From: Entomortierella parvispora E1425
Taxonomy: Eukaryota; Fungi; Mortierellomycota
Assembly (NCBI GenBank): GCA_020891255.1
Contig: BQFW01000012.1
Coordinates: forward strand, 1,736,001-1,800,000
DNA length: 64,000 bases
Reading direction: 5' to 3'
Position 1 is the stretch's first letter; each line of letters begins with the position of its first letter. The translations under genes were made by a program, and so were the position numbers. Below are positions 9,501 to 45,077 of this stretch, in pieces. The notes beneath the pieces were generated by a model. The model was not told the DNA's origin, searched no databases, and worked only from the letters and a program-made list of their open reading frames with translations.

Positions 9501-12500
9501 CAATTTTCGTCAGAAAGAAAGCAGACAGATACAAGTATCCCGGAGATCCAGCATACACCTTTGGTGTAATAGCAGATGTAGCCCAGCCTCCTGCTTGAAT
9601 TCTACGGAGAGGTGCATCCAGATACTGAGCGAGGCAGTGATGGTAGTGCCGATAGAACGCGAAAAATAGCTCGCTATCGTCACTCTGCCACCTTCTGACC
9701 CAGTTGCCAAACATCTCCATCGGTGGTGGCGCCTCTCCTGAAGACATCCTCCGCTTTTGCTTCTCAAACTCTCTCCACCACGACCCTGTGCCGATAAAAC
9801 ATATTGGTGCAAGATGCTCCGGAAAGAAGGTCATGATCTGAGGCATTCCACAATTTTCTCTGTTGGACATAATGAATAATGAAAAATTAGAGAAGCTTCC
9901 TTTTTTCCCTCTCGGATAGGACTGCACAGGTTTTTTCAACAATAGCCTCACTTACCCAGTCAAATCCATTGCTTTGGCCATGCGGCTGATGTAGGATCGA
10001 CTGGCTGGGAGAGCATGGAGCAATCCGAAGGCGACTCCAGGAAGCTTGAAGAAACATAACGCCAGGATTTTTGCACAAAACGTAATCACGTTTGAGTAAA
10101 CGCCCTTCTGATTCAGTCTCTCGATGGCATACTGCAGCGATTGTGTGAGCGTCCGTCGGTATTGATGGAACGAAGACCAGAACGCGCCAGAATCCGTGAA
10201 TGGATACCCAGCGCCTAAAGTCGTACTAGAAGAGACTGAGGTTGTTGACGATGTGTGCTCTGTCACTGAACCATTCCCTGAACCGTCCATAAACGTCCTA
10301 ACAGTCGATGGCGTCGTTGGCTTCGAGATTAGATCCTCGACGCGATCTATAGAGATGGGCTCAGAATTCGTCAGCATCCAGTCCGCGCAGAAGGTAGATA
10401 GCAAGATCTTAATTTGAGCACGTACCAAACTCATCAAACTCCTTCCTAAAATTGCCCAAGTAAAGTCCTGGCATGTTAGCAAGCTGGTTTACCCGCATCT
10501 CATCTCAAATCCTGCAGCCCGTTATGACATTACCTTGTCATGAGGGCGATGATGCACTCAAAGTAATGGCATCGATCGGTGTAGAGAGCATCTGGCAGTG
10601 CAACCAAGAGTGTTGTCCACCTGGAGTGCAAAATAGTTTTTTTGCAAGTTAGAATACACAAAGCAAAGGCCATTCCGATCGCCTCAATGTCACCTGTCGA
10701 GTATGTTGCTTTGTTGATTTTTTGCATGTTGCTTTTCCCAGTGCTGTCATCCAACTGAGCCTGATGCGCTGATGCAGTCTGCATAGCCCTGTCCCCCTGG
10801 TTTACTGCTCTTCCTGACTCCCTGGACTCCTTTTTTTCCTGCTATCCCTTGTTGTCAATAGCCAGCTTGCTTAATATCTCGTCTCTTTTTTTGATCCTGC
10901 TCTTCTGTTCGTCTTTCTTTTTTCACCCATAGATTGTTTTTTAAAGACATTTTGCTCCCGCCCTAGTTCATGTGATATAATTCGCTCATACCATTGCATG
11001 ATAAGATTCCGTCCAGTCTTGAGCGACGCCTCCGAGAGTGAGTCTATTCCGTTTAAAAACAGATGGGGTAGATGATGCCAAAAAGTTAGATTGGTGAGAT
11101 ATAGCGCAATAAAGGACAGCACTTTGCACACAGCAATCAGGGTTCTCCGGACTGCAAGGGCCTGCTTCTTTTGTTGTTATTGCTAAAGGACCCGTCTCCT
11201 TTGTCCCCAAGGTTCCCTTCGCCTCCTTTTTTTGTCTCATGGTGGGGACAGTGGAGGGGTGTCAAATTCTCATGGTTCATCAACTCCTGCTTTGACGCCG
11301 TGGAAGTCAATGCACCGTAAGAAGATCATCAGTCCCGGTCCAGTCCCAGTCCAGTTCCACATTCTGCCCATTTTTCTTTTTTTTGTGCAATTTTCTTTTG
11401 TCGTACCTAAACTTGGCAGATCCTTTCGAAGCCAAGGCAAGAGATTGGTCTTGAGGACTTCGATTCGATACCGATCCTTTTGGTGAAATCTAAAGTGTTA
11501 GAACATGAAAATCACGGATGAACAAAAATAGGGTTATGGAGTGAAGCAAGCAGAGAGATCGATGCACAACAAGAGCGTCATTGTGTTTGTCCATGGTGAT
11601 CCGTCACGCATCGCATCGCCTTTGCCTCTTTTTTTCCTTGAATAAGCGGCAGTCTGTCCGGCGATGCACAAGACGCTCAGAGCAATAGGGGATCTGCATT
11701 CGTCTTCACAACCTCCCTGCCCCCTTCCTGCCTCCCTTATCTCTCCTATTTTGACCAGGGGCGAGCTTGTGTCTGTGACTGATCGGAAACTGTGCCACGA
11801 TCTTTTTTTTTGGGGGGGGGGGGGAGCTTACCTTGCCAAGGATCGCTCCAACACCTTGTATTCCTGCTGCCCCGTCTGCCCGATCCAGTTGCGCAAGAGT
11901 CTGTTTTTCACGGACGATCGCATGTCCGTGCTGGCCGACTTTGAGTGTGAGCTGGCTTTGGTGACAAAGGGTGGGGAGGAAGATCGGGAATAAGGTGGGA
12001 TGATGATGGACGTGGGTGGGAGATCACTGCAGGACTGTCTTCGTGCCATGTTCAAGCTAAGCTCAGGGAGAATGATGGTCCGGGTAGGGGTTCGCAGTAG
12101 CGGAGGGATCGTTGAAGCCAATGGTGGTACAGGAGTACCAGAGGAGATGGAGGGAAGAGGTGGAGGAGGAGGTGTTTCCGGTTCAGAGCCAAGAAACGAA
12201 GAACGACTCTCTGTGGGCGGTGCTGGCTGCGAGGAGTGACGGCAGGCAATGGGGAATCGGGCTGTCGGCGTCGTCGGTGTCGTGGAGAGTGGGATGGATG
12301 AACAAGACTGAGCGATTGTGGTATCAATAGAGAGACCTTGTCCCGCTGATTGATCTGCTCTGGATGAAGCACCCGCGGTGTGGTTCTCAATGCCTTTTGG
12401 AGTATTAGAAAGAGACGATGACCATGAATAGGATTGTGAGGATGGTGTGGACAAAGGCGAGGAAGGGGAAGTCAGCACTGGAGAAGGAAGAACGTCCAAA

Positions 12501-28351: not shown

Positions 28352-28567
28352 AAACAGTTGTGACAAGCAAGATACCCAACCAAGTTGACAATCATTCTTC
28401 TACGGCTATTCTGGGTTGACAAATAATAGACCCTCATTTCTGCACCTAAGTCGGTGCACATAACAACGTTGGCACAAAAGCGGAGTGAACATGCTGCGAA
28501 CTGACCAAGTGCGGTGCAGTGTAACAAAAAGAAAAAAAAGACTGCGTCGATGCCAAAACAAAAGATT

Positions 28568-28639
28568 GGGCCGAACCGGGAATTGAACCCGGGACCTCTC
28601 GCACCCTAAGCGAGAATTATACCACTAAACCATCCGGCC
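28568..28639 (-). tRNA. tRNA-Pro(AGG), copy 1
   Basis: 72-nt cloverleaf: acceptor stem GGCCGGA/TTCGGCC, anticodon arm CTCGC-TTAGGGT-GCGAG, T arm CCGGG-TTCAATT-CCCGG. A T-run terminator follows. Confidence 0.97.
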
Positions 28640-28700
28640 AATTATCCTGTTGGAGACGATCGAGTCGGGACATTCATGATCCGGGAAAGTCCGAACACAC

Positions 28701-28725
28701 CACGTGATATTTGAATGGTCACGTG
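28701..28725. promoter_or_regulatory. Pair of RTCACGTG (E-box/CDEI-like) sites centred between divergent tRNA genes
   Basis: CACGTG at 28701 and 28720, each ~60 bp from the nearer tRNA 5' end. The same arrangement recurs at 30961/30977. Confidence 0.5.
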
Positions 28726-28784
28726 AGTATATTGAAGTGCAGGATTGTGGGTGATCTGAATCCACCCTTAACATCAATCAGCTT

Positions 28785-28856
28785 GGCCGGATGGTTTAGT
28801 GGTATAATTCTCGCTTAGGGTGCGAGAGGTCCCGGGTTCAATTCCCGGTTCGGCCC
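28785..28856 (+). tRNA. tRNA-Pro(AGG), copy 2
   Basis: Identical 72-nt sequence followed by AATCTTTTTT (Pol III terminator). Confidence 0.97.
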
Positions 28857-28928
28857 AATCTTTTTTGTTTTCCTGGATTTTCAATTTTGCCTTCACCAGA
28901 CTCCTCCCTGCTGAGGATTCTTCTTTTT

Positions 28929-30660: not shown

Positions 30661-30825
30661 GTAGAACAAAAAAAACAATTATCCTCTCTGTCTTTCCATG
30701 GCAGAAGAATGCCACGGGTAAACACGCTAGTTCTGGTTAAAAGCACCTCTTCAAAAAGGATCCTCGGGGTCCAAGGCATGAGGAATCGGACAAGCCAAAA
30801 TGAGAATCCAGGAAAACAAAAGATT

Positions 30826-30897
30826 GGGCCGAACCGGGAATTGAACCCGGGACCTCTCGCACCCTAAGCGAGAATTATACCACTAAACCATCCGGCC
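30826..30897 (-). tRNA. tRNA-Pro(AGG), copy 3
   Basis: Identical 72-nt cloverleaf. Confidence 0.97.
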
Positions 30898-30960
30898 AAT
30901 TGACTTCTTGGAAGCAGATTATTTGAAACATTCATGATCCGGTGATTCAATATAACTCTG

Positions 30961-30982
30961 CACGTGATTTGGTATTCACGTG
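30961..30982. promoter_or_regulatory. Second pair of RTCACGTG sites centred between divergent tRNA genes
   Basis: CACGTG at 30961 and 30977, 63-64 bp from each tRNA 5' end. Confidence 0.5.
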
Positions 30983-31044
30983 ATCGAATGTTAGTAACGT
31001 CGGATCATGAATGTTTCAAATAATCTGCTTCCAAGAAGTCAATT

Positions 31045-31116
31045 GGCCGGATGGTTTAGTGGTATAATTCTCGCTTAGGGTGCGAGAGGTCCCGGGTTCA
31101 ATTCCCGGTTCGGCCC
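31045..31116 (+). tRNA. tRNA-Pro(AGG), copy 4
   Basis: Identical 72-nt cloverleaf followed by AATCTTTT. Confidence 0.97.
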
Positions 31117-31177
31117 AATCTTTTGTTTTCCTGGATGGCTTGTCCGATTCCTCATGCCTTGGTCCTTTTTTTTTTTT

Positions 31178-31227
31178 GGGTTTATCTATTTGACAACCCA
31201 GGTTGTTCGTTTTACCTGACAACCCAC
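31178..31227. repeat. Left terminal inverted repeat of the MULE
   Basis: GGGTTTATCTATTTGACAACCCAGGTTGTTCGTTTTACCTGACAACCCAC. Confidence 0.92.
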
Positions 31228-31315
31228 TCTATATTTGGTTAGTCTCGTTTTTTATTCGGCAACCCACCTGTCATTCCTCAATTGACAACCCAGGTTGCCA
31301 AACAAACGTTTATTT

Positions 31316-34300
31316 TTATGAGTGCTGTCTAGAATTGTGACCTTCCCCGCTGCACACTCCACACTTCGTTGATTTTTTTTTTGTCTCCATGCTACTCTTT
31401 ATCCGAGAAGTCCTCGGTCTGCCCTTCGTCTTTGTATAGTGAGGATCCTTCATACCTTCTTCGCCTGCCCCCCTCACAATGACACGGTTTAGGCCATCTT
31501 TAACTGTTTCGAATACTTCTGGATTGGAGTTCACGGTGTCCATGATATTCTTCATCAGGCCAGATATCTCTCCAATGCGGCGTTTTTTGGAAAGGTTGCG
31601 TTTATCAACCCCCGACAGGGATGGCACTGAGGGGAAAACCTTCATGATATCGCTCATGAAAGAAGAAGCAGGCTCTCCCTCTGCACTCCCCACCTGAGCG
31701 ACCGTCTTCTGCGTTTTTGCGCTCAAAAACGCCCCTGAGAGATCAAGATCTGTTAGGTCCTGCAGTTCTTCTTTAAACCACCGCATCGGAATAAGCCTGA
31801 CATGATACTTGCATCTGTCACTAACTTGCATCAGATGGAAATAGTGTCGACATACAAATCCGCTGTTTTGGAGGAGGAGGCAAGTACAAATGTACGAGCC
31901 ATCAGCCAGTAAAAGTATGTGCTGAAGTGACTTTCGCTCCGTGTCCAAGCGGAACGTCACGTCGAAGATTTGTACAATTCGATCAGAACCAACGATTGTC
32001 TGGATGGACTGGAGAGAGCTCATTTCGCGATCGTCTTTTGACGATCTCTCAATCTAAGGACAAAGAGAAGAATAACGGCTTAGTACCTCTATCTGGTCTT
32101 AGGATTGCGCTTGGGTATTGGAATGATGTACAAGTACTTACTTCCTCGAAATCACCTCCTTCGATTGATCGTGGAGCACAGGCGTCTATACCTGTGTGTG
32201 GATTGGACTGATACAAAACAGAGCGCGACATCTCTAACTTCATCTGACTTTTTGCTGCGATGCCAAGATAGCGATTGTTTGCATCGATAACATCGGCAAA
32301 CATTTGCTGAACAAACGTCGACGTTGCGGGATCAACCGTTGTATCCGTCTTGTAGAGAATATACTTTGAAGTCTGGGCTTCATTTGATAGCTTCTTTTCA
32401 ATTGCCTCGAACAGTGCTGGAAGGGACGTCTTGCCATTGACGGCCCTTTTGATGGCCGCATTCATACTCTCCACACGCTGAGTCGACTGCATTCCGGCGG
32501 TAAATCTTGTCCCAACCCAAGGCCAAGCCCAGTGCTCGCGCTTCTCGCTTATCCTTTTCAGGTAACCCTCAATCTTTGGCTTATCAACACCAAAGACCGC
32601 AACATGCTCTGACCATCTACGCTCAAAATCGGAGGCCGTAAGCGCGTTTCGGGTTGTCCAAAAAGCTGATATAAAATCATTCCAGTCTTTGCCTAGCGCT
32701 CCGTGGAGGTTTTTGTTCAGGTTTTGTCGCAGATGCCAGATACAGTTCAAGACGGTGGTCTTGCTTATAGTTGTGGCACAAGCGGCCTCCATAGCGGGAT
32801 CTTCGTCGACGAAAATGATATGAGGATATACGTTGTCGCTTGCCGCCAACAGTTGCTCTAGAATCCACTCATAGTCCTCCACTGATTCCCCCAGAAACCA
32901 ATGAACACCCTACCAAACGACTCTTTCCTGCATTGTCGATAATGACTATAACATTAAGAGGCATGCCGAAACGGTTCGTCTTGTAAGTGTTATCGCTGAT
33001 GACAACATCGCGGTAGCGTCGGTAGAGGTATCTTTGAGAAGGGCTCATCCAGAACATCCTTCTGAGCCGGCCATTTTCATCCAGATCGGTAGCAAAGAAC
33101 CAGTCTTTATCGTTGCGCGTTTTATCCTGTAGAATCTTGTGGAGCTCTGCAGCCTCGGAGCCACCGATGTGAGCACTGTTTTTTGCTTTCTGGATGGCAT
33201 TTGCGACTGTCCGAAGATCGAACGCTTTGTCTGGCCATTCATGTTGAAGCATGTAAACAATAAACTTGGGATCACATTTGCCTGCATGGGTGGTAATAAG
33301 CTGGAGCATTTCGGCACTGAGTCGTTTATCACGCTGGTTGGACTCCAGGATGTCGCATTTCTTGAGTTCGTGGCAGTGGTCTGTGACAAGGGAAGTAATA
33401 CGCCAACGTGGAAACAACTCCCTTGGAGACCGAACAACGATTTGGCATGGGCAGCACTCGCGGCTGGAGGTGCAATTGCGGTGCTTATCTGGGTCAACAT
33501 TCTTTTGCGGAACATGTTTTCCAGCCTTCTTGCAACCAAAAATTACTATTCATCGGCAAACCATACTTGTGTCAAAAAGAATTGATCCATAGAGAAAAAA
33601 AAACAACCTGCAGATTTTAAGTACCTACCTCGGGGACTTTGGCCATTCATCCTCTTGAGTCTGGACTGCATCCTTCTCAGGAAAAATCCTTGCTTGCGAG
33701 CCCATGCGTGGAGTTTTTCTTCTAGTTCTTCAAGAGTTTCATGCAACTGGCCGATATAAGGTGTCCACGGCAGGCTGTCACCCTCTTCAGCACTGTTGCC
33801 TGTGATGGCTATGGCGGCAGCCGCTACCTCTGCCCTGGCCCCACATGAAGAGGGTCCGTCAGCTGCAAGAGCATCACTTGTAATGGTTACGGCGGCGGCC
33901 GCTGCCTCTGCCCTGGCCCCACATGAAGAGGGTCCGACATTTAAGAAAGCATCACTTGTAATGGTCTCTCTAGAATAGCCGCATCGGCTACAGCTGTAGT
34001 GACCCCATCTTCGGTAGGTATCTCTTCATTGACTGCGACTTTTACAATGGCGTTGTCTGTGATGATTGAGTCAGTTGTAACTATGTCCGGATCATTTGCC
34101 GACACAATATCGAGATCAGCCACCCTTGCCACCCCTTGGCCTCGAGAAGCATGTGCTGCATGTTCGATCTAGATGAATTGAGTATTAATCTACGGTGGTC
34201 GGACAACGGGGGATTTGTGTCATACGTTACAAACAAGCAAAGATTCACCTTGTTGTAGCCGGTGGCCAGCTTCAAAAGCCTCAATCGATGATGTGCAGAT

Positions 34301-35395
34301 CGTTCGTGAGTCCAGAGTTCTATTTCAGGATTCATTCTCCTCTCGACAGCATTGATGGAGTTGACAGCGCACGATCCACTGCTAGCTGGTTGCCGTGGGA
34401 CATCGAGATGCTCGATGTGGCTGCTCCAACGATCTATATCAAGCCCACAGCATCTTATCCATTGTCGTATCGCTTGACAGGCCTCACGAGGTGTGGGATA
34501 AGAGAGGGAATCCCCAAATGAGATCTGACATTTAACGAAATCGACCTCGATCGCACCCCAATGAGATGGCATATAAACAATCGAGAATGCCTTTTCAACT
34601 CGCCCGCTTCGGAGCTCGTCCCTTTTCCATTCCAGGTATAGATTCTTTCGCCAGTTGTTGAGTTGAGTAGGTGTGATCAAAAGGTATCGATTGCTTGCCC
34701 CATACGACTCGGCAAAGAGCTGCAACACCGTGCGCACGACCTCGTCATTAATGAAGCACTCCTTCATGAGACAAAACGCGTTTCCAATGGCCAATGGCGC
34801 CTCAGAAGTTGGCTGAAACTCCCAATGGATGATGCCTGAGGTATTGGAAATTAGGTCGCGGATCCAATCGGCAAAGTTGCGATCCGAGACGGCATCGATC
34901 CAGTTAAACATCTCCATCGCTTGAATGATGAAAGTGTGCGTCTGCACCGCGCCGAGTAAGATTTTGACCGAGGCATGCGAGAAATCTCCAACGCCATGGA
35001 TGCGAATGCCCCACGCCTTTTGAGACACTGACGCACCAACTATAAATAAACATATTGTAACTGTGCTGGTCAGGAGTTTTGCCAATTGACACCTAAACGA
35101 AAAAGAGCAGCCGATGTTTTCTCTTATTGAACCTACGCAGCATTTCGTTGGCCTTCATAACAACATCTTGCGAAGGTAGCGTTTTGAGAATTGCAACTCT
35201 GGCTTCGAATATTCTCTCTTTGGGCGGTGGCAGCTCATATATGACCTCGACCTCGGTACAAGTTTTAGTAATCGGAAGGGGGATTTTCAGCAGTGCCTTG
35301 CCAGTTTGTAGCCTTTGCCAGTATTGGCTGTACATCACTTTCGATTCTTTCGACGTCCCTGGGTCGTCCACAAGATGATTAACAGCTGACGACAT
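31316..35395 (-). pseudogene. Ulp1(C48) protease-FAR1-MULE-SWIM-zinc knuckle fusion transposase, 5 exons, two frameshifts in this copy
   Basis: Exons 35395-35137, 35039-34249, 34168-33629, 33545-32142 and 32053-31316 have GT-AG introns. Their phases are all consistent once a 2-nt AG insertion (~33965-33972) and a 1-nt G insertion (32888-32892) are removed, giving ~1,242 aa. Protease motifs are INDEVV, HW, GDSL and QPASSGSC. The FAR1-like region reads C..CPC..HCH. The catalytic core is ISDNTY, FVDEDPAM, CIWH and RVESMN. SWIM is CTC...CRH and the knuckle is CGVCSGEGH. Confidence 0.85.
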
Positions 35396-35648
35396 CCTAT
35401 ATTTTTTTTAAATGCCAAAATAGACTGTATCAGCAAAACGCTCCAAAGAACTTCAGTAGGTACGAGACAGACAACAAACCCCGTACAGAGAAGTATGGCT
35501 CGGCTGAGGTTATAAGATTCTTGTGAATCTTCGTCGGTGCCTACTGCCGTAGCTTTATATCAGAAGTTCCAACGTTTCATTGTCTCCGCTTCGAGTAGAG
35601 TAACTCAAAACCCCGAACACTATTTGCAGTCTATGTGTATATACCATA

Positions 35649-38600
35649 TATGTACCATAGTCGGCCAAAAAAAAAAAAAGATCCATTTTGCCTTCTGTAT
35701 GCATGCAATTGACAGGCATCCTCTAAGTCATGGAGGGTGATAGTCCAGTGAGCTCTGACCTTGTCCGGTCCGGAAGACTGGAGCGGGTATCAGCCGTGTT
35801 TCTTTCCTCTGGTATTGATCTACCCCCGGTCAACCCTCAGTCAAAAAAAAAAAAAAAAAACCTCTGCATGCAAGAGTAGACCATTCCTAATTGGGACTTC
35901 TGGCGACTCGCAAGGACTCGCAAGACGGTATGTGTACCATGGTCGGCCAAAAGAAAAAAAAAAGTGCATTTTGCCTTCTGTATGCATGCAATTGACAGAC
36001 ATCCCCTAGGTCATAGAGGGTGATAGTCCAGTGGGCTCTGACCTTGTCCGGTCCGGAAGACTGGAGCGGGTATCAGCTGTGTTTCTTTCCTCTTGTATTG
36101 ATCTACCCCCGGTCAACCCTCGGTCAAATAAAAAAAAATCCTCTGCATGCAAGAGTAGACCATTCCTAATTGGGACTTCTGGCGACTCGCAAGGACTCGC
36201 AAGACGGTACGTGTACCATGATCGGCCAAAAGAAAAAAAAAAGTGCATTTTGCCTTCTGTATGCATGCAATTGACAGACATCCCCTAGGTCATAGAGGGT
36301 GATAGTCCAGTGGGCTCTGACCTTGTCCGGTCCGGAAGACTGGAGCGGGTATCAGCTGTGTTTCTTTCCTCTTGTATTGATCTACCCCCGGTCAACCCTC
36401 GGTCAAATAAAAAAAAAAAAGCCTTTGCATGCAACAGTAGACCATTCCTAATTGGGACTTCTGGCGACTCGCAAGGACTCGCAAGACGGTATGTGTACCA
36501 TGGTCGGCCAAAAGAAAAAAAAAAGTGCATTTTGCCTTCTGTATGCATGCAATTGACAGGCATCCTCTAAGTCATGGAGGGTGATAGTCCAGTGAGCTCT
36601 GACCTTGTCCGGTCCGGAAGACTGGAGCGGGTATCAGCCGTGTTTTCTTTCCTCTGGTATTGATCTACCCCCGGTCAACCCTCAGTCAAAAAAAAAAAAA
36701 AAAAACCTCTGCATGCAAGAGTAGACCATTCCTAATTGGGACTTCTGGCGACTCGCAAGGACTCGCAAGACGGTATGTGTACCATGATCGGCCAAAAGAA
36801 AAAAAAAAGTGCATTTTGCCTTCTGTATGCATGCAATTGACAGGCATCCCCTAGGTCATAGAGGATGATAGTCCAGTGAGCTCTGACCTTGTCCGGTCCG
36901 GAAGACTGGAGCGGGTATCAGCTGTGTTTCTTTCCTCTTGTATTGATCTACCCCCGGTCAACCCTCGGTCAAATAAAAAAAAATCCTCTGCATGCAAGAG
37001 TAGACCATTCCTAATTGGGACTTCTGGCGACTCGCAAGGACTCGCAAGACGGTACGTGTACCATGATCGGCCAAAAGAAAAAAAAAAGTGCATTTTGCCT
37101 TCTGTATGCATGCAATTGACAGACATCCCCTAGGTCATAGAGGGTGATAGTCCAGTGGGCTCTGACCTTGTCCGGTCCGGAAGACTGGAGCGGGTATCAG
37201 CCGTGTTTTCTTTCCTCTGGTATTGATCTACCCCCGGTCAACCCTCAGTCAAAAAAAAAAAAAAAAAACCTCTGCATGCAAGAGTAGACCATTCCTAATT
37301 GGGACTTCTGGCGACTCGCAAGGACTCGCAAGACGGTATGTGTACCATGATCGGCCAAAAGAAAAAAAAAAGTGCATTTTGCCTTCTGTATGCATGCAAT
37401 TGACAGGCATCCCCTAGGTCATAGAGGATGATAGTCCAGTGAGCTCTGACCTTGTCCGGTCCGGAAGACTGGAGCGGGTATCAGCTGTGTTTCTTTCCTC
37501 TTGTATTGATCTACCCCCGGTCAACCCTCGGTCAAATAAAAAAAAAAAGCCTTTGCATGCAACAGTAGACCATTCCTAATTGGGACTTCTGGCGACTCGC
37601 AAGGACTCGCAAGACGGTATGTGTACCATGGTCGGCCAAAAGAAAAAAAAAAGTGCATTTTGCCTTCTGTATGCATGCAATTGACAGGCATCCTCTAAGT
37701 CATGGAGGGTGATAGTCCAGTGAGCTCTGACCTTGTCCGGTCCGGAAGACTGGAGCGGGTATCAGCCGTGTTTCTTTCCTCTGGTATTGATCTACCCCCG
37801 GTCAACCCTCAGTCAAAAAAAAAAAAAAAAAAACCTCTGCATGCAAGAGTAGACCATTCCTAATTGGGACTTCTGGCGACTCGCAAGGACTCGCAAGACG
37901 GTATGTGTACCATGATCGGCCAAAAGAAAAAAAAAAGTGCATTTTGCCTTCTGTATGCATGCAATTGGCAGACATCCCCTAGGTCATAGAGGATGATAGT
38001 CCAGTGAGCTCTGACCTTGTCCGGTCCGGAAGACTGGAGCGGGTATCAGCTGTGTTTCTTTCCTCTTGTATTGATCTACCCCCGGTCAACCCTCGGTCAA
38101 ATAAAAAAAAATCCTCTGCATGCAAGAGTAGACCATTCCTAATTGGGACTTCTGGCGACTCGCAAGGACTCGCAAGACGGTACGTGTACCATGATCGGCC
38201 AAAAGAAAAAAAAAAGTGCATTTTGCCTTCTGTATGCATGCAATTGACAGACATCCCCTAGGTCATAGAGGGTGACAGTCCAGTGGGCTCTGACCTTGTC
38301 CGGTCCGGAAGACTGGAGCGGGTATCAGCTGTGTTTCTTTCCTCTTGTATTGATCTACCCCCGGTCAACCCTCGGTCAAATAAAAAAAAAAATCCTTTGC
38401 ATGCAACAGTAGACCATTCCTAATTGGGACTTCTGGCGACTCGCAAGGACTCGCAAGACGGTACGTGTACCATGGTCGGCCAAAAGAAAAAAAAAGATAC
38501 ATTTTGCCTTCTGTATGCATGCAATTGACAGACATCCCCTCGGTCATAGAGGATGATAGTCCAGTGGGCTCTGACCTTGTCTGGATCAGAAGACTGGAGC

Positions 38601-38833
38601 GGGTATCAGCTGTGTTTCTTTCCTCTTGTATTGATCTACCCCCGGTCAACCCTCGGTCAAATAAAAAAAAAGCCTTTGCATGCAACAGTAGACCATTCCT
38701 AATTGGGACTTCTGGCGACTCGCAAGGACTCGCAAGACGGTACGTGTACCATGGTCGGCCAAAAGAAAAAAAGATACATTTTGCCCTCTGTATGCATGCC
38801 ATTGACAGACATCCCCTAGGTCATAGAGGATGA
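35649..38833. repeat. Tandem array of 11 full and 1 partial units of 279-284 bp inside the MULE
   Basis: Units start (GTGTACCAT) at ~35649, 35932, 36211, 36493, 36777, 37056, 37340, 37621, 37905, 38184, 38465 and 38744. They differ mainly in poly-A length and in roughly a dozen substitutions. Confidence 0.97.
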
Positions 38834-38991
38834 TGGTCCGACATGTTCTTCTGGTTCGAAACAAAGGGACTGACTCGACTGACTCGTACATCCAGGCTTC
38901 TTGTGTCAGCAACTCCCACATGTATAAATATGTGTACTTGCGGCATCCAGTTCTGTATCTTGTCCTCCTCATCGTTCTCACCTCTTCCAAC

Positions 38992-39843
38992 ATGCCTCGT
39001 GGTGCTTGCACTTACGGCTATTGCGCGCTAGGTCTCCTCCCCCCTGCCGAACCCAAGACCAAAAATCAGAAGAACCATGTTGCAGGGTATCACGTCGACA
39101 ACCCCATCAAGTTCATGTGCGGGTACACTGATCGACAAGTCACCTTTAGTCGAATTCCCACAAAACACATGGATTTCGTCTGCTACTGTGGCCTGACGTT
39201 CACCCTTAACTCTTCGATCCATCGCCATTACCATTACTGTGCCGTTGCCAGGGACGCCGCCCTAAATGCAATCGCACATCCACCTCCTCCTGGTGCAGGT
39301 GGTGCAGGCGATGGCAATGGCGTTATTGTTGCGCCGGCGCCTCCTTCAACGGCCCTGGTGGTAGCGGAGCGCAGCGTCGGGAGCATTCTGGAGGAAAAGT
39401 TGATTGAGCAACATCAAGCCTTCCTGGAGACGTTCACAGGACAGAGCGCGAAGCTCGTCGAGAGCATGACCCAGTCTCAGTTGTCGTTTCTGAACACCTT
39501 CACCGCTTCGTATGCTGAACAAGCTGTGGCACATCAGCGCAGCATCGCTGAACATAACCGCTTGGCCTTAGAGGAGCAGCGCACGGCCCTCGAGGAGCAG
39601 CGAGCTGCCATTGAGATGCAGCGAGCAGCTGTTGAGGAACAGAGAGTGTTCTACAATCGCCATCAAAACAATCAAGCAGAGATAATGGCCGAGCAGAAGC
39701 TTACAAGGGACGAGGTTAGAAACCTCATGTCACTCAAGCGCGATCGATCTTTCACGTTGGAAGTCAGCGAGCGAGCACTCAAAGGCCTTCAGAGTGACCC
39801 ATCTTACATGGTCAGCCCCTGCCAGGACGACGAGGACATGTGA
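38992..39843 (+). CDS. MULE cargo gene: two atypical zinc-finger-like motifs plus coiled coil (283 aa)
   Basis: Intact ATG-TGA ORF. Motifs CTYGYC-x17-HVAGYH and CYCGLTFTLNSSIHRHYHYC, a Pro/Gly linker, and LEEQR heptad repeats. Confidence 0.75.
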   Translation: MPRGACTYGYCALGLLPPAEPKTKNQKNHVAGYHVDNPIKFMCGYTDRQVTFSRIPTKHMDFVCYCGLTFTLNSSIHRHYHYCAVARDAALNAIAHPPPPGAGGAGDGNGVIVAPAPPSTALVVAERSVGSILEEKLIEQHQAFLETFTGQSAKLVESMTQSQLSFLNTFTASYAEQAVAHQRSIAEHNRLALEEQRTALEEQRAAIEMQRAAVEEQRVFYNRHQNNQAEIMAEQKLTRDEVRNLMSLKRDRSFTLEVSERALKGLQSDPSYMVSPCQDDEDM

Positions 39844-40091
39844 AAGACAGATAGTGCGCAATCCCACGTCGACGAAGTGTAACAGGTTATGTTCGCAATT
39901 ATTCAATAAAAATATTCTTGCGAAATATCTTCTGATGCTATGGCGGACGAGGTGGACTTTTTTTTTTTTTACATATTATTTGCTATGTCGAGACAGTGAA
40001 GCGAAGTGCGAGAACAAACTACTAACAATGAAGCCCGAATCCCCGCGCAACAAATGCCACGACTCATCGCTGTTTAATAAAGAATAAAATG

Positions 40092-40748
40092 TTACAAAAG
40101 TGTCGATATATGAACCTGGCCACGCACACCAGCCAGTAAGCGCTGGTCTGCCAGCTTAAGGTCATCTTGGGCATCTGGGCAACGGCCTTGGTGGTGGCCG
40201 GAGTGAGGTTTACCGCATTGGCAGGTGTCTGGTGGTAAGATCGTAGCAAATGCATTGTTCCAAGGTTGGCCTCGCTGTGCTTGCTTCTTCATCTTGGAGC
40301 GGATGCCTTGAGTCTTCTCCCAGGCAATAGTAACCTCGCCGCGTGTCTTCCGGATACGTGCAAGAGTATCCCTATCCTGACGACGGATAAGTTGATGAGC
40401 AACTGCGACCACGACCGAGTGAGGGCCTTTAATAATTGGAGTCCAGGCCTTGATCGAAGCGCAGTGTAACACTCCTTGGTAGGCAGTGACGACCGACTGA
40501 GCCGATGCCAACGGGGCTGGTGCCAACGGGCTGGTGATCTGTCCCCTCACAGGAGGACAGGTCGTTGGCGAGTCATGGAAGGCAGAGTACAATGATGTCC
40601 ACAAAGCCGTGTCCGATGGCTGGTACCATGGAGGCGGTTTCGGGCGGCAACTTCGGGTTTGCGGGCTTGTTGCGAACGAGGTGGAGCTCACTATCTGACA
40701 ACCCAGGTTTCCATGCAATTTTCCAAAGTGTGACTGGTGGGTTGTCAA
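40092..40748 (-). other. Open frame near the right end of the MULE; possible second cargo gene (no in-frame ATG until late)
   Basis: 218-codon open frame with a basic helix (RRQDRDTLARIRKTRGEV) and CQCGKPHSGHHQGRC. Start unresolved. Confidence 0.3.
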
Positions 40749-40786
40749 ACAAAACGAACAACCTGGGTTGTCAAATAGATAAATCC
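40737..40786. repeat. Right terminal inverted repeat of the MULE
   Basis: Reverse complement is GGATTTATCTATTTGACAACCCAGGTTGTTCGTTTTGTTTGACAACCCAC. Confidence 0.92.
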
Positions 40787-40844
40787 TTTTTTTTTTTTTT
40801 TTTGAGACTTTCTGAGCACTTCCAGCGTGCTCGAGAAAGGATTT

Positions 40845-43169
40845 TTATTTTTTTGAGTCGTGCGATTCTATAGAAGTGGGAGAGGACGGGGGGTCTGGGA
40901 ACGAACGCAGGAGCACCGAATTCGATCGATTTTGTTTAGTTTCGATAGCCAAACTTTTGTGGGCTGTCACGGGTGGTGGAGGAGGAAGTGGGGGAGGGAC
41001 GTAGGCAGTTGAAATAGCATCAGTACTGGAAGCCAGACCAGTGTCGATCGGTTCCTGAGCAGGGTCTGCAAACGGATCTCGTTCCAATTCTGGATCCATC
41101 ATAATAACCTCGTTGGAATCAAATGTTTGAAAAGGGTCGTTTGTGGACGTTAGAGAGGGAACGGAACTTGTGCGCCGATCGTCGCTGGTCATGGTGATCG
41201 AAGTTTCGGTCCGCGATGGTACTGCAAGATTATGCTCGCTGTAGTAACGTGTATAGTATTCGAGTTGACGTTGCTCATGCCTCAGGGCCTTGATACTCAG
41301 GTGCTCCAAAAACTCTGAATTCACTCGGGTGGGGAACCCAAGGGCCTGTTGATGTGCCTCATCTGTCATATTGCTGTTACTGTCGTCGAAAAAGTTGGAA
41401 GAAGGGGTAGAGCTATCAAAGGTTGTAAAACTCCGGAGTCGACTTTGCAAACCAGTCGAGATGGATCGATTCACGTAACTCTGGATCGAGTTCACGGTGC
41501 TGCGAAACGGGTTTCGCACCCAGCCCTTGTAGGCCGCGTCTAGATCCTCGCTCTCCTCCCCCTCTTCAATAGAGTCGTGATGTCGTTCTGCTCTTGATGA
41601 GGAAGAAGTGTCATCAAACCCAAGGATAACTGCCTTGTGCGACTGAGAAGAGGGCGATGGTGGGGGGAGTGCAGAGCGCTCTGCCCTTGCAGCCATGGCC
41701 GCCACCCAGTAATCGCGAACGACCGAGGACACCTCTTCATCACCACTGGCTTGTGCTGAGGACGAGATCGAGAGCACGTCTGAGGTGGAGGATGGTGTCA
41801 GCACCGAGGATGATGATGATCGTTTCCATTCACCAGATGACGGCAGATGAGCAAGGGGCGGGTATGAAAGGATGGACGACTGTCGCCATGCACCAAGATC
41901 AAGCTCAGAGATATCGTCCAAAAGCGAAGAAGACTTGGCAACAGTGGGCACCATCGGCACTGCACCAACGGCCCGAACCATAATCAAATCGGGGAGATCC
42001 TTTTGATTTTGGGCAATGACGGACTTGACTTGATGGGGTTTTTCTGTGGAAGGGTAATCGTCTTCATAATAATCGTCGTCGCGCATCATGTGGAAATGGT
42101 CGTTTTCATCCTTTAGAGAACCCTTGAGGCCGCGTCCCTGAAGGCGCAGACGCTTCTTAAGACCAAGACCATCTGCTCCGTCGCGGGGATGGTGATGTCG
42201 GGCCCTGCGTCTTCTCAGGACAAGGAACGAGGCCACAGCCGCGATAATAGCAAATCCACAGATGCTACCAAGCGTGGCTCCGATGGTGGTCGCACGGTTT
42301 GATTTGACTGTTGTACCACTCGAGCCTTGAGTGGAGGGGTCATCAGGCAATGGAGGCAATGGAGGCAGATTTAAAGGTCGACCGCCATACCCGCCACCAC
42401 TACCGCTTCCTGTAGGGGTTGTCCCGATGGGTGCGTTTGTTGGGAGAGAGCTTGACGAGCCTGTGGCCACAGGAAGGACTGTGCTCGAAGTCACAGCGCT
42501 TGGGAGAGTGGTAAGCGATGATTTTGGGGGATTGGTTGCCTGCACTGGGTTGGTTGTAGGGTGAGGAGGAGTGGACGATGTTACCACTGGTGGTGGAGGG
42601 GAAGGAGGAGGGGTGGTCACCACCACAGCTTTTGGATCCATCATAAAGTAACAGGCGCCGTTTTGAGTGTTTGTGCCTCTTTGCCCCCGAGCTACGATTC
42701 GAATCGCGACATCTTTGGCGAGCTCACCACAGTTGGGGACATTAAACTGATACTGGCCCTGGGTTGAGATGAGACCTCTGTTGGAAAATAAGGTGGATAT
42801 AGTGCGCCATATGCCGCCTTTCGGTCCATCAATGTCCATGCAATAGAGCGTTGCAGTTATACTGTCATAGGTCGAGAGGTCGGCACTTGAAGCTTGCCAG
42901 GTCAACAGAGATGTTTGACCGGGCTGAACTTCGGTGTTATAGTTGGGGTACGTGCACTGAAATGCTTCGGAAACTGTGGAGAAAAAGGATTGGAAGAGAA
43001 CAAAGCAAGCAACGGACAGAGAGAGCGGAGAGGGTTTGTGCAGGTATCGCCGTGGTTGTTGTGAGAGCTGTGATGAGGGCGAAAAGTCGAGTGAGGTTGA
43101 TGAGGAAGAGGAGGGGACTTCGACTGTAGATCGTAATGATCGGGGCGCGGAGGATCTGAAAAATGTCAT
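40845..43169 (-). CDS. Type I membrane, receptor/sensor-like protein (774 aa); paralog of 200-2329
   Basis: The likely ATG is MTFFRSS (43169). It has the same extracellular domain (TATLYC...WRTISTLFSNRGL...PNCG), a stalk, a TM (IGATLGSICGFAIIAAVASFLVL) followed by RRRR, and shared tail motifs. Confidence 0.8.
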   Translation of the reverse strand: MTFFRSSAPRSLRSTVEVPSSSSSTSLDFSPSSQLSQQPRRYLHKPSPLSLSVACFVLFQSFFSTVSEAFQCTYPNYNTEVQPGQTSLLTWQASSADLSTYDSITATLYCMDIDGPKGGIWRTISTLFSNRGLISTQGQYQFNVPNCGELAKDVAIRIVARGQRGTNTQNGACYFMMDPKAVVVTTPPPSPPPPVVTSSTPPHPTTNPVQATNPPKSSLTTLPSAVTSSTVLPVATGSSSSLPTNAPIGTTPTGSGSGGGYGGRPLNLPPLPPLPDDPSTQGSSGTTVKSNRATTIGATLGSICGFAIIAAVASFLVLRRRRARHHHPRDGADGLGLKKRLRLQGRGLKGSLKDENDHFHMMRDDDYYEDDYPSTEKPHQVKSVIAQNQKDLPDLIMVRAVGAVPMVPTVAKSSSLLDDISELDLGAWRQSSILSYPPLAHLPSSGEWKRSSSSSVLTPSSTSDVLSISSSAQASGDEEVSSVVRDYWVAAMAARAERSALPPPSPSSQSHKAVILGFDDTSSSSRAERHHDSIEEGEESEDLDAAYKGWVRNPFRSTVNSIQSYVNRSISTGLQSRLRSFTTFDSSTPSSNFFDDSNSNMTDEAHQQALGFPTRVNSEFLEHLSIKALRHEQRQLEYYTRYYSEHNLAVPSRTETSITMTSDDRRTSSVPSLTSTNDPFQTFDSNEVIMMDPELERDPFADPAQEPIDTGLASSTDAISTAYVPPPLPPPPPVTAHKSLAIETKQNRSNSVLLRSFPDPPSSPTSIESHDSKK

Positions 43170-45077
43170 TGTGATCTTCCGGAAGAGGCGAGGAGGTGAA
43201 GAGAGAAAGAGAAATGAGGAAAAGTAAGGAAGGGGAGCTTGAATAGACAGAGGTGGCAATCCCAAGGACAGAGGGGAATAGACCGAACGAAGAGGCAAAG
43301 GGCACAAGAAGAAGAAAGAGGTTGATATAAAGAACAGGGAAGGGAAGGAAAAGAAGGAAAGAGAGAGGATGGCGCAGGCCTGAGGAAAGACATTCTTCCG
43401 AGGACTTGAGAAAATGGTGGTGTGCAGATTGCATTCAGAAAGCGGGAACGGGGACGGTGGGACCTGCAGTAGCCCAAATGGGGGTCGGCTGTCAGAGAGG
43501 GTTTCGATATCAAACATCTGAGCTCTTTGCAAGGCTTCTGGAGATTGCCCGTAGCAAGTAAACATGCCCGGGGGTTGTTTGCACTTTTTGCAGTGTTGTG
43601 GAGTGAAAAGTGACCAAAAACAGGCCAGAACGCGAGATGGCCGCGAGTGATTGGGAACGGTCCATTTTTTTCAGATCTCTTATCAAGGCCGCACAAGAGC
43701 CACTGTGCAACGCGAGAATTGCCGACAAAAAATCGACAGAGTAGCATTTCCCACAACCCCCCAAGCACTTTACACGGAGGGCGTAAAGCAAGCCGGAGTC
43801 ACTCGATCTATAGTAGCTAGCCCTACTCAAAGATGAAGAATGGGCACAGAATAGGGAAGAGCAGAGCAGCCAAAGAGCTGAAGAAGAAGGGCATGGGCCA
43901 CGTATCTTTCGGGAAACCTCCACCACACGGACAAGGGTGCCTTTCATTTCCTTTTTTTATTTTTTTTTGATCGATCAAATCTCATCTTCACTACTGCCAG
44001 ATACTCACAAGTTGACCAGACAGTCTTGTCATTCTGTTGAGTTGTCGAGTCTGGAGGGCACGGCAAATAGGCCTCCATGCAGGCCGCGGGTGTGTGTCAG
44101 AGTGCGCCCAGCTGTTTAAAACAGCGAACACAACCAGACATTTCGGCAACAGTGCGGCGAAGAACTGCAGCGGAGGTTGCCCTTGCACAGCAATTGAGTA
44201 CCCTGCGCCCTTCCCGTGCCCCCAAACTGTACCCTCATGCCCCCTGGCACCCTATACCCTCATGCCCCCCTGCCCCCCTGCCCCTCCTTACCCCCCTGCC
44301 CCACCTCAATGCATCATGTCTCGCATCCACTTTGGACCGTGGGCCAGGGAGTTGGTACATGGTGTGTTCCCAGCAGCTTTCGGCCTTTTTTACATGAGCG
44401 TGTTTCGGGTGAATACCTTGTAGCGAGTACTGTACGTGTTACATGTCACGGTGAAAGCTACCAAGATACCGAGTACTTTTTGTATGTATCGCAGACCCGT
44501 GCGTCGCTGCTTTCAGACCGGGGACTTGATCGTATTCGCATCTCAGTGCTCCCCAAGTTGGCTCACTCATTGCCGATTCGAGGAATATGGTCAAAGACGA
44601 AAGAAAAAATGCTCTTTTGTTCGATTAATTGTCGGAAGAAGACAAGGACGTCAGAGCTTTCCCTTCATTCTTTTTCTTCTTTTCCGATGGGGGCTGAGAT
44701 CCGCATGGGCCAGACTGCTTAGACAAGGGGCCTCATAAGTGGTTTACAAATGCCCCATTAGCAACAAATTGAAAAGGGAGTCTACATTCCAACGAATCTC
44801 AGCAAAAAAAAAAAGAGCATCAGATTTTTTTTTCTTTTTTTTAATTTGCGAAGTGGGTTCATTTGCAGGGAGCATCGAGTGTGGTCCACGCATTGCCTGG
44901 TGATGAGACACACGGGCCCTCGTAGACAATATGTTGATGGATATATTACGCGGTTTTATTATACAGGTGTGATTGAGCGGGGCGTTGTAGTTCAAGAAAA
45001 AAAAAGATGGTATGGAGAAGTGGCCGGGGCAATGACTGGGGCTATGACTGGAGCCAAGTGCATGAGCTTTTTTTCGT

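Follow-up and report, generated by a model that had tools for sequence, protein, structure and literature searches.

The element and its ends

The window analyzed here, a 64-kb stretch (64,000 nucleotides) of the Entomortierella parvispora genome, contains at positions 31178-40786 a complete Mutator-like element (MULE) of 9,609 bp. The features of the element and of its immediate flanks are the following:

31169-31177: left target-site duplication, 9-bp poly-T, TTTTTTTTT
31178-31227 (+): left TIR, 50 nt, homologous to a TIR of Linnemannia elongata (L001:3430-3477)
31316-33746 (-): transposase coding region, with Pfam matches MULE and ZSWIM1-3_RNaseH-like, and FAR1 (weak) on the proteins of the copies L002 and L003
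31316-32023 (-): SWIM motif (CxC...CxH) and C-terminal CCHC knuckle
32052-33548 (-): MULE/RNaseH-like DDE core, then an intron of about 85 nt
33627-33746 (-): start of the FAR1/WRKY-type DNA-binding domain, then an intron
33801-33965 (-): tandem duplication of 78 bp (2.1 copies), within the linker that joins the Ulp1-like frame to the transposase frame
34249-35395 (-): Ulp1/C48-like cysteine-protease ORF, assigned by family profile and conserved catalytic residues
34249-35040 (-): Ulp1-like catalytic-type domain
about 34369-34371 and 34390-34392 (-): Cys224 and Gln217 of the Ulp1-like domain
about 34510-34512 and 34561-34563 (-): Asp177 and His160 of the Ulp1-like domain
35096-35395 (-): N-terminal part of the Ulp1-like ORF
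35647-38839 (+): tandem array (TRF: period about 279-284 bp, 11.4 copies, 94% matches, score 5606)
about 38923-38932: TGTATAAATA near the zinc-finger gene
38992-39843 (+): accessory zinc-finger/coiled-coil gene, intact, 283 aa
about 39905-39910: AATAAA near the zinc-finger gene
39957-40675 (-): 5'-truncated retro-insertion with poly(A) tail and flanking 10-bp direct repeat
40737-40786 (-): right TIR, 50 nt
40787-40795: right target-site duplication, 9 bp, TTTTTTTTT

The two 50-nt TIRs are 92% complementary, and a 32-nt TIR probe found two matches in the window (0 expected), which are the two element ends. The GACAACCCA motif occurs twice in the left TIR, once more in subterminal sequence at 31284, and again at 40697 near the right end. 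The terminal motifs GACAACCC and CAACCCRGGTTG are conserved and common to elements of different genera. The left target-site duplication lies inside a poly-T run just after a tRNA-Pro(AGG) gene (31045-31116). Two further E. parvispora copies, L002 and L003, match the element at 99.8% over exactly the same span and carry their own 9-bp duplications on both sides (TTTTTCCTT and TTTTTTTTT, respectively); the target-site duplication of the L. elongata element L001 is TAATTTTGC. Outside the array no substitutions were found among the three E. parvispora copies, and the differences there are single-base indels. The TIR-bounded element proposed by the sequence-only reading is thus confirmed by its TIRs, its 9-bp duplication and two more copies with identical boundaries. 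It is almost certainly an active MULE, autonomous and very recently active, of a lineage so far found in Mortierellaceae only. Each copy has one frame break or more, at homopolymers or single-base duplications, and these are plausibly Nanopore homopolymer errors of the assembly (PMC8759367).

A further open frame had also been counted among the genes of the element. This ORF, 40092-40748(-), has its first ~24 codons in element and TIR sequence and the remainder in the retro-insertion, the poly(A) tail of which appears as T13 on the + strand (39958-39970). On either side of the insertion stands a copy of the 10-bp direct repeat ACGAGGTGGA (39947-39956 and 40676-40685), and the L. elongata element, with 365 bp from the zinc-finger stop to the TIR, lacks the insertion. 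The ORF was therefore rejected as a cargo gene: it represents part of a retroelement-like insertion with poly(A) and a 10-bp duplication of its own, and as a fourth ORF it is dead.

Transposase and Ulp1-like domain

Pfam MULE and ZSWIM1-3 RNaseH-like matches were obtained with the window ORFs 32869-33417(-) and 32049-32882(-), and the annotated proteins of L002 and L003 gave FAR1 (weak), ZSWIM and MULE matches. The transposase frame of the window copy is broken by an extra C at 32888, within a C run, and is restored by the majority consensus. Before the FAR1 domain, L001 has an in-frame ATG and the window does not. Compared with L001, the transposase shows 62-65% amino-acid identity, with dN/dS of 0.14-0.15 and dS of 1.78-1.84. 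The order of FAR1-type domain, MULE DDE core, SWIM motif and CCHC knuckle is that of the FAR1/hop-like transposases of fungi and plants; no difference from these was seen, and the transposase is an ordinary member of the group.

The Ulp1-like ORF lies upstream of the transposase on the same strand, and the two reading frames meet near 33967. The window protein gave no match to Pfam C48. A profile built from 32 family members, 18 of which match Peptidase_C48, does match yeast Ulp1 (1euv, E=6.9e-13) and SENP1/2/3/5. The residues HW...GDS...Q...SGSC are near-invariant in the family, and the His-Asp-Cys triad is intact in the window copy. An extra A at 35100 is seen in the window copy only. Between the window and L001 the dN/dS is 0.18 (dS 1.55), and in more distant relatives C48, FAR1 and MULE domains are fused into one protein. 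The leftward Ulp1-transposase coding region described earlier from the sequence, for one protein or two, is supported by the Pfam MULE match, the family profile and the intact triad.

The same pairing of MULE transposase and Ulp1/C48 domain in one element is known from KAONASHI/KI-MULEs of Arabidopsis, CUMULE of melon and MuDR-type elements of rice, maize, hydra and lancelet (PMC2836005). The present elements differ from these in belonging to a Mortierellaceae lineage, in the position of the protease domain, which precedes the transposase as a fusion or in tandem, and in a window protein that is too divergent to match Pfam C48 by itself. A survey of fungal DNA transposons used C48 as an accessory-domain filter, and the family at hand is not described there (PMC5751038). 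During expression or transposition the Ulp1-like domain may serve as a deSUMOylase, or as a related isopeptidase, with chromatin or repair factors as its substrates.

Zinc-finger gene and tandem array

The zinc-finger gene, which is divergent from the Ulp1-transposase strand, was found intact, in agreement with the sequence-only reading. In the N-terminal 95 residues of its product C6, C11, H29, H34 and C43 are conserved, together with the C2HC-type pattern C64-x-C66-x3-F-x5-[LI]-x2-H79-x3-C83, and this Cys/His pattern is invariant across the family. A variable linker, a helix (residues 122-252) and a conserved C-terminal SFTLEV...DP.Y motif follow. The long helix (130 residues) is predicted with pLDDT above 90; AlphaFold models of the N-terminal domain are unreliable (pLDDT 42). 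Pfam zf-C2H2 was matched by 2 of 11 family members (E=0.012), PDB profile matches were weak (E=0.1-3), and the putative finger assignment is based on the residue pattern.

Twelve relatives of the gene were found, all in Mortierellaceae or in metagenome/read-assembly contigs, and the homology search returned no plant homologue. At all seven places with readable context (L001, L002, L003, L004, L009, L010 and L011) the gene adjoins element parts; the places span Entomortierella, Linnemannia, Dissophora and one read assembly, and L001, L002 and L003 have homologous TIRs. The deletion derivatives examined, L004 and L009, both retain zinc-finger coding sequence, which in L004 is an intact 320-aa ORF. 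Between the window and L001 the dN/dS of the gene is 0.19 at a dS of 1.84, which matches the dS of the transposase and of the Ulp1-like ORF. In Linnemannia pairs the dN/dS is 0.17-0.24 for the finger, 0.18-0.34 for the coiled coil and 0.65-0.84 for the linker. These comparisons indicate that the finger domain is under purifying, not diversifying, selection, that the gene has accompanied the element from the separation of the Entomortierella and Linnemannia lineages onward, and that it is a selected, long-standing element component.

The large array of repeats reported for the divergent promoter region is present: 3.2 kb long, it fills the divergent intergenic region with 11 full units and a partial twelfth of about 281 bp (range 277-284 bp). 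The units fall into three subtypes, partly recurring as a three-unit pattern, and each has two TGCATGCAA sites, one GACTCGCAAG doublet and two same-strand A-tracts of at least 9 nt. Unit order is identical in the window, L002 and L003, and outside arrays the unit was found neither in the window nor in the fetched loci. An independent, unrelated array occupies this intergenic position in L. elongata, with 101 bp x8.4 in L001 and 108 bp x2.2 in L004, and about half of its unit (53 bp) occurs once in L011. L001 contains a second repeat, 197 bp x3.3, between transposase coding blocks, and in a more distant lineage a Lobosporangium locus shows a short repeat, 107 bp x2.9, between divergent genes. 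No recurrent motif common to the window and L. elongata arrays was found, and no array is present in L011 and L010, both of which carry the zinc-finger gene. The idea that the array accompanies the family therefore holds in part, for position in L. elongata, and fails for L011 and L010. In the window, part of the bidirectional promoter region has been amplified, recently and in this lineage specifically, to give the array, which travels with the element and is not a conserved family component.

Possible roles of the accessory gene and the array

Taken as a package, the element probably combines an accessory gene on which selection acts at the level of the element, an array that is facultative, and a fourth ORF that is junk. 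Among other explanations, a helper role is rather doubtful: like MURB of MuDR or MutB of Yarrowia Mutyl, the zinc-finger protein would assist transposition or serve the transposase as a cofactor, at the termini or in integration, and slippage in replication, or unequal exchange, would have left the array in non-coding DNA as a selectively neutral by-product. MULEs with extra helper or DNA-binding ORFs are known (PMC6446971), terminal motifs and finger domain are both shared between genera, and the array, missing in some members, has units of different length and sequence in different lineages. However, arrays that were amplified independently at one intergenic position, in two lineages or more, suggest something beyond drift, and in at least three transpositions the array was transported without change. 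Mutyl of Yarrowia lipolytica (mutA, mutB) and MuDR of maize (mudrA, mudrB) also have 9-10-bp target-site duplications and a second ORF, for which a DNA-binding role has been reported in the case of mutB (PMC6446971), whereas the present element also has a Ulp1-like domain and a 3.2-kb array. The zinc-finger protein is set beside MutB and MURB by description, not by sequence.

An unlikely reading is convergent counter-defence of the VANDAL/VANC type, in which the zinc-finger protein would bind array motifs and remove or block silencing marks and Ulp1 would strip SUMO-dependent heterochromatin factors. Consistent with it are a three-part architecture conserved in the lineage, purifying selection on the zinc-finger gene, the independent origin of arrays at one shared non-coding position in the elements of E. 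parvispora and of L. elongata, the second repeat of L001, and the deletion derivatives, which keep the zinc-finger coding sequence and, in L004, a 2.2-unit array. In this reading the three copies free of substitutions outside the array would mean that the family is escaping control at present. Against it, the zinc-finger family has no homology beyond Mortierellaceae and the metagenome/read-assembly contigs, the arrays are unrelated and without a common motif, in contrast to a conserved finger domain (omega 0.17-0.24), and L011 and L010 have the gene without an array. The literature read, PMC2836005 included, contained no demonstrated SUMO role for transposon Ulp1 domains.

VANDAL21 (Hiun; VANA, VANB, VANC) likewise combines a MULE transposase with two further coding functions, one of them lineage-restricted, and formation and turnover of tandem repeats take place in its non-coding regions (PMC5735166), as they do for the arrays here. 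In contrast, the zinc-finger protein has no sequence relationship to any plant protein found, 50-bp TIRs are clear and kept where VANDAL TIRs are degenerate (PMC10398659), and a 281-bp unit replaces the dense run of 8-9-bp motifs of VANDAL21. Moreover, the array is missing from some family members. The sequence-only reading had taken a Ulp1-like VANB as established, and this was not confirmed: 'Ulp1' and 'protease' are absent from the text of PMC5735166 and PMC10398659, and a 2019 MULE survey called vanB function unknown (PMC6446971).

Pack-MULE-type capture, with zinc-finger gene and array as recently captured host sequence functionless for the element, is very improbable and largely refuted: MULEs are known to pick up host fragments (PMC6446971) and this one did take in the retro-insertion, but between genera the gene and the transposase have equal dS, every homologue of readable context lies next to element parts, dN/dS values fall well short of 1, and the repeat unit was not found outside arrays in the sequences examined.

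For the favored package of selected accessory gene and facultative array, the following scheme can be considered. The transposase would bind GACAACCC(A/G)GGTTG motifs at the termini and cut and paste the element into T-rich 9-mers. Somewhat short of an even chance, we tentatively suggest that the zinc-finger protein oligomerizes via its long helix and binds non-coding DNA of the element as an element-specific regulator, which would activate the bidirectional promoter or keep it open. Array expansion would multiply whatever sites lie in the promoter region, and its 22 same-strand poly(dA) tracts would disfavor nucleosomes. For this Mortierellaceae lineage, the plant-like anti-silencing reading may serve as a reasonable analogy.

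Ends, copies and surroundings of the element

The Mutator-like element (MULE; 9,609 bp) lies at 31178-40786 between terminal inverted repeats (TIRs) of 50 nt, at 31178-31227 and 40737-40786, which are 92% complementary. A 32-nt TIR probe matched twice in the 64 kb, at the two ends of the element, with no match expected by chance, and all six occurrences of the GACAACCCA motif in the window (0.67 expected) are found within 110 bp of these ends. The element is flanked on either side by the 9-bp target-site duplication TTTTTTTTT. Two further full-length copies were identified in E. parvispora (L002:2347-11958 and L003:2349-11958), which share 99.8% identity with the window copy across exactly 31178-40786 and have unrelated flanks. 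The TIRs, the duplication and the shared extent of the copies show that the boundaries proposed in the sequence-only reading were accurate. The target-site duplication is TTTTTCCTT in L002 and TTTTTTTTT in L003. A full 8.0-kb element of L. elongata (L001) has TIRs at 3430-3477 and 11406-11453 that are homologous to those in the window, and the 9-bp duplication TAATTTTGC. Duplications of 9 bp were thus observed at four independent insertions (window, L002, L003, L001), and the targets were T-rich 9-mers in three of the four. TIRs, a target-site duplication of about 9 bp, a MULE DDE domain and several copies with the same ends place the element in the Mutator superfamily. Terminal GACAACCC(A/G)GGTTG motifs are conserved between genera, GACAACCC motifs being present in the TIR and in the subterminal DNA. 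Two TIR-pattern scans of metagenome contigs gave no matches, and no RIP-like AT bias was found in the base composition.

Outside the tandem array the three E. parvispora copies do not differ by a single substitution; all small differences are 1-bp indels in homopolymers or single-base duplications. Frame breaks in the window copy come from one additional C at 32888, to which comparison of the copies located the MULE-domain frameshift, and one additional A at 35100; in L002 and L003 they come from an additional T at 33713 and an additional G at 39378. Because E1425 was assembled from Nanopore reads, with polishing by Nanopolish and Pilon (PMC8759367), and the indels are confined to homopolymers and single-base duplications, the frame breaks most likely stem from assembly errors left in a repeat with several copies. 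The annotated genes of the family appear truncated by such residual Nanopore homopolymer errors: it is owing to the extra G at 39378 in the zinc-finger gene that protein P0002 (EMPS_08981) is annotated at 192 aa only, and no gene is annotated over the Ulp1-like ORF in L002 or L003. The family transposed very recently and probably remains active.

Left of the element, identical tRNA-Pro(AGG) genes form two inverted pairs, at 28555-28869 and 30768-31165, 2.26 kb apart:

28568-28639, minus strand, tRNA-Pro(AGG), pair 1
28785-28856, plus strand, tRNA-Pro(AGG), pair 1
30826-30897, minus strand, tRNA-Pro(AGG), pair 2
31045-31116, plus strand, tRNA-Pro(AGG), pair 2

An Rfam search returned these four tRNAs and nothing else. 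Pair 2 lies within a near-perfect palindrome of about 400 bp, whose arms (30806-30941 and 31001-31136) show 100% complementarity. The insertion target of the window element is the poly-T run directly 3' of the right-hand tRNA-Pro gene, of which 12 T remain. Immediately to the right of the element a 906-aa ORF (40845-43565, minus strand) has no Pfam match at E<0.001. In the neighborhood of the full L. elongata element, an unrelated 732-bp element with 48-nt perfect-type TIRs (L001:11525-12256) is located just past the right TIR, and a short element of about 417 bp (L001:13817-14233) 2.4 kb downstream. The 37-46-nt ends of the latter resemble the TIR and subterminal sequence of the family, and it may be a MITE-like non-autonomous derivative.

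Transposase, Ulp1-like domain and a retroposed segment

Pfam searches placed MULE and ZSWIM1-3 RNaseH-like domains within 32049-33417 of the minus strand (PF10551, E=5.8e-7 and 1.8e-5 for the two halves of the window transposase; PF21056, E=6.5e-8), and the annotated L002 and L003 proteins match FAR1 (weakly), ZSWIM and MULE. A majority consensus of the three copies recovered an open frame of 499 codons across the MULE core. The transposase begins with a DNA-binding region of FAR1/WRKY type, followed by the MULE DDE core, a SWIM motif and a terminal CCHC knuckle, the SWIM pattern (CTC...CRH) and the knuckle having been read straight from the translation.

The Ulp1-like ORF is situated upstream of the transposase on the same strand. 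It starts at 35395, the 'Ulp1' of the sequence-only reading having been placed at 34249-35040. On its own, the window protein has no Pfam C48 match, and in the PDB it matches yeast Ulp1 (1euv) only at E=1.7. An exhaustive phmmer search yielded 156 representative clusters of relatives. A profile of 32 family members matched 1euv at E=6.9e-13 and SENP1 at 1e-11, with matches also to SENP2/3/5, and 18 of the 32 members matched Peptidase_C48 (PF02902). H160, W161, D177 and C224 (the HW, GDS and SGSC positions) are near-invariant and align with the HW, D and C of Ulp1, and a conserved Gln aligns with the Gln at the oxyanion position of Ulp1. The spacing, 17 from H to D and 47 from D to C by our own count, resembles that of Ulp1. 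Taking into account the profile matches, the C48 matches and the near-invariant catalytic positions, the Ulp1/C48 assignment made in the sequence-only reading is sound, even if the window protein alone has no Pfam match.

Named relatives of the Ulp1-like protein come from Dissophora, Lobosporangium, Gryganskiella, Linnemannia, Mortierella and Entomortierella, and for some of the more distant ones the annotation gives one C48-FAR1-MULE protein (1180-1446 aa). Ulp1 and transposase may be one gene or two: the window copy lacks an in-frame ATG from the Ulp1 ORF to the FAR1 domain, and one base in L003 joins both frames; the L. elongata transposase frame begins at its own ATG. The Ala/Gly-rich linker before the FAR1 domain contains a 78-bp in-frame tandem duplication (33801-33965; 2.1 copies, 86% matches), and the equivalent linker of L001 (6802-7092) an acidic 15-bp repeat present 19 times (EISEVEIS...). 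Between the blocks coding for the MULE core and SWIM, L001:4389-5021 holds a tandem repeat of 197 bp x 3.3 with long poly-T runs, in the place of which there is only a short intron of about 85 nt in the window. This repeat could be a nested insertion or a further non-coding amplification.

Two more distant loci were compared. L013:10001-16311 (BQFW01000003) represents a divergent second family in E. parvispora, whose Ulp1 domain is 24% identical by tblastn. Its annotation shows one C48-FAR1-MULE protein of 1320 aa ('zinc finger SWIM domain-containing protein 3'), which has a paralogue of 1500 aa; neither the zinc-finger gene nor an array was found nearby. At the Lobosporangium transversale locus (L012:7467-11170) the product of the gene divergent from the Ulp1-like gene is 410 aa long and is itself weakly similar to the Ulp1-like domain (21% over 119 aa, E=6e-6). 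A TIR search at L012 gave poly-T/poly-A pairs only, and defined no element boundaries.

The sequence-only reading had listed a further open frame within the element. This ORF (40092-40748, minus strand) has relatives at 57-79% identity, among them the E. parvispora protein P0166 (EMPS_06752), which reaches 86 residues further N-terminally. Similarity begins about 24 codons into the ORF, its first codons being element and TIR sequence. The segment 39957-40675 has an A13 tail on the minus strand (39958-39970), and the 10-bp direct repeat ACGAGGTGGA, found just twice in the window (0.1 expected), borders it on either side. The poly(A) tail, the flanking repeat and the 5' truncation mark the segment as a 5'-truncated retroposed insertion, and the frame was rejected as a cargo gene. 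The insertion is older than the last transposition burst since all three copies carry it, and it accounts for the observation that only 365 bp separate the zinc-finger gene stop from the TIR in the L. elongata element. P0165-P0167 have no Pfam match, including any to a reverse-transcriptase/endonuclease domain; the parent sequence could be the 3' end of a LINE or a retrocopied gene. In L. gamsii a weak tblastn match to the ORF (L010:231-485; 29% over 85 aa, E=6e-6) was noted to the left of a Ulp1 N-terminal fragment, which suggests that sequences of this kind are dispersed in Mortierellaceae genomes.

The zinc-finger/coiled-coil gene and the tandem array

The plus-strand accessory gene (38992-39843) encodes an intact protein of 283 aa at 38992-39840. 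One annotated relative is an E. parvispora protein that is identical but truncated, and more distant ones occur in Linnemannia elongata. Single-sequence and profile searches of 5.8 billion proteins retrieved 12 relatives, all from Mortierellaceae or from metagenome/read-assembly contigs, and no VANC homologue; Pfam has no family for the protein.

In the N-terminal 95 residues there are conserved Cys/His positions. In the pattern C64-x-C66-x3-F70-x5-[LI]76-x2-H79-x3-C83, the residues C64, C66, F70, H79 and C83 are invariant in eight sequences; this is the spacing of a classical beta-beta-alpha finger that ends in Cys (C2HC), fitting C-x(1-4)-C-x3-F-x5-L-x2-H-x3-(H/C). Matches to known domains were weak: zf-C2H2 (PF00096) was matched by 2 of 11 members at E=0.012, and PDB profile matches to the fingers of ZBTB38, SALL4 and MP42 had E=0.1-3. 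The AlphaFold model of the N-terminal domain is unreliable (pLDDT <50 in the full-length protein, 42 for the first 100 residues alone). The sole reliable part of the full-length model is one long helix at residues 122-252 (pLDDT >90), a prediction consistent with an oligomerising coiled coil. The intact gene, the C2HC pattern and the long helix agree with the zinc-finger/coiled-coil description of the sequence-only reading, but the domain matches are weak.

Wherever the context is readable, the gene adjoins parts of the element in constant relative position and orientation. The read assembly L011 has the transposase, Ulp1 and zinc-finger genes, and in the internally deleted or truncated loci of L. 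gamsii (L010), Dissophora ornata (L009) and a second L. elongata strain (L004) the zinc-finger coding sequence is kept. Between the window element and L001, dN/dS (Nei-Gojobori) is 0.19 for the zinc-finger gene, 0.18 for Ulp1 and 0.14-0.15 for the transposase, with saturated but similar dS values of 1.84, 1.55 and 1.78-1.84, respectively. The similar dS and the low dN/dS show that the zinc-finger gene has travelled with the element since the lineages of the window element and L001 split, and that it is under purifying selection; neutral evolution of the cargo, which would have counted against the sequence-only reading, does not fit these values. With element-associated contexts wherever these are readable and a dS equal to that of the transposase, recent capture of a host gene (Pack-MULE cargo) was rejected. 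In the Linnemannia pairs omega was 0.17-0.24 for the N-terminal domain and 0.18-0.34 for the coiled coil, the linker being nearly neutral (0.65-0.84), and nothing pointed to diversifying selection on the part that putatively binds DNA.

The tandem array in the divergent region was delimited by Tandem Repeats Finder at 35647-38839 (period about 279 bp, 11.4 copies, 94% matches, score 5606). Split on an anchor, it gives 11 complete units (277-284 bp) and part of a twelfth, which continues into unique promoter sequence. The units fall into three subtypes, partly recurring as a three-unit pattern, and a unit-by-unit signature comparison showed the same unit order in the window, L002 and L003; the unit-sized indels between copies in a MAFFT alignment were dismissed as alignment artefacts on the strength of this comparison. 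The array is an integral, stably transmitted part of the E. parvispora element. Each 281-bp unit carries two TGCATGCAA sites, and 26 of the 29 TGCATGCAA matches on both strands of the window (0.9 expected) are in the array. The unit also carries a GACTCGCAAG doublet and a pair of A-tracts (9 nt or longer), always on the same strand; the array totals 22 of them, and the left part of the element has two A- or T-tracts of such length. CpG observed/expected is 0.65 in the array compared with 0.78-0.91 in the other regions measured. The unit was not found elsewhere in the window or in the fetched loci.

At the corresponding position in L001, directly upstream of the zinc-finger gene, lies an unrelated array of 101-bp units x 8.4, and L004 has 2.2 units of the L001 type. 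No array was found in L011 or L010; about half of the L001 unit (53 bp) occurs once in L011. At L012, with its different divergent neighbor gene, there is an intergenic repeat of 107 bp x 2.9. The window and L. elongata arrays have no motif in common beyond chance, and blastn-short between the intergenic regions found only a 13-bp chance match. In the loci compared, the array is seen not to be conserved across the family, and since the two arrays lack a common recurrent motif, they are recent, independent local amplifications of the divergent promoter region. Of the parts whose co-occurrence the sequence-only reading proposed to check, the zinc-finger gene is beside element parts wherever the context is readable; the array is present as described, in units of about 281 bp in the divergent region, yet missing in some members. 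Recurrence of arrays at one position hints at selection, and is equally compatible with a slippage-prone non-coding region.

Possible function and relation to known transposons

The element is a cut-and-paste MULE with intact-looking machinery, a conserved accessory gene under selection and a facultative promoter array. The transposase would recognise the terminal GACAACCC(A/G)GGTTG motifs and insert into T-rich 9-mers. The zinc-finger protein would be an oligomeric DNA-binding factor acting on the element itself. Our preferred reading, put forward tentatively, is that it regulates the bidirectional promoter of the element or keeps it open. A serious rival, which we consider unlikely, is that the protein would act as a helper of transposition at the termini, where motifs are conserved.

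A VANC-like anti-silencing factor, as in the Arabidopsis VANDAL elements, would be a special case of the promoter-regulator reading, and is less probable again. The recurrence of arrays parallels the published behavior of VANC target regions (PMC5735166). However, VANDALs have degenerated TIRs (PMC10398659), whereas the TIRs of the window element are clear, and a VANC-type third protein, of which the window element has no homologue; because of these two differences it is not a VANDAL. In VANDALs the target motifs are amplified as fast-evolving tandem repeats in non-coding DNA; arrays occur in the family of the window element and in L. elongata, L011 and L010 lack one, and the more distant Lobosporangium locus has a short repeat. 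The most elaborate version holds that an early-diverging fungus has a convergent, element-encoded and sequence-specific anti-silencing system parallel to VANC-VANDAL and unrelated to it in sequence, in which an oligomerising C2HC-finger protein binds sites multiplied by the array within the bidirectional promoter and keeps the family active while the Ulp1 domain deSUMOylates; this we regard as improbable.

Ulp1-bearing MULEs have been reported from plants, hydra and lancelet (PMC2836005). A survey of fungal DNA transposons used C48 as a filter for accessory domains (PMC5751038), and additional MULE ORFs such as mudrB, mutB, vanB and vanC are on record (PMC6446971). We found no published description of this Mortierellaceae lineage, its zinc-finger/coiled-coil gene or its arrays.

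Active DNA transposons with intact accessory genes have rarely been characterised in Mortierellomycota. This family lends itself to direct study of transposition, regulation and epigenetic state, since its ends are clear, its three copies show no substitution beyond the array, and both Nanopore reads (DRA010776) and RNA-seq data (DRA013164) are public. The zinc-finger/coiled-coil gene is conserved, has no described function and so far comes only from this transposon lineage. The association of Ulp1 with transposases recurs across kingdoms, and a fungal system could make its role testable. If the analogy with VANC is true, sequence-specific anti-silencing with tandem-repeat targets would have evolved more than once.
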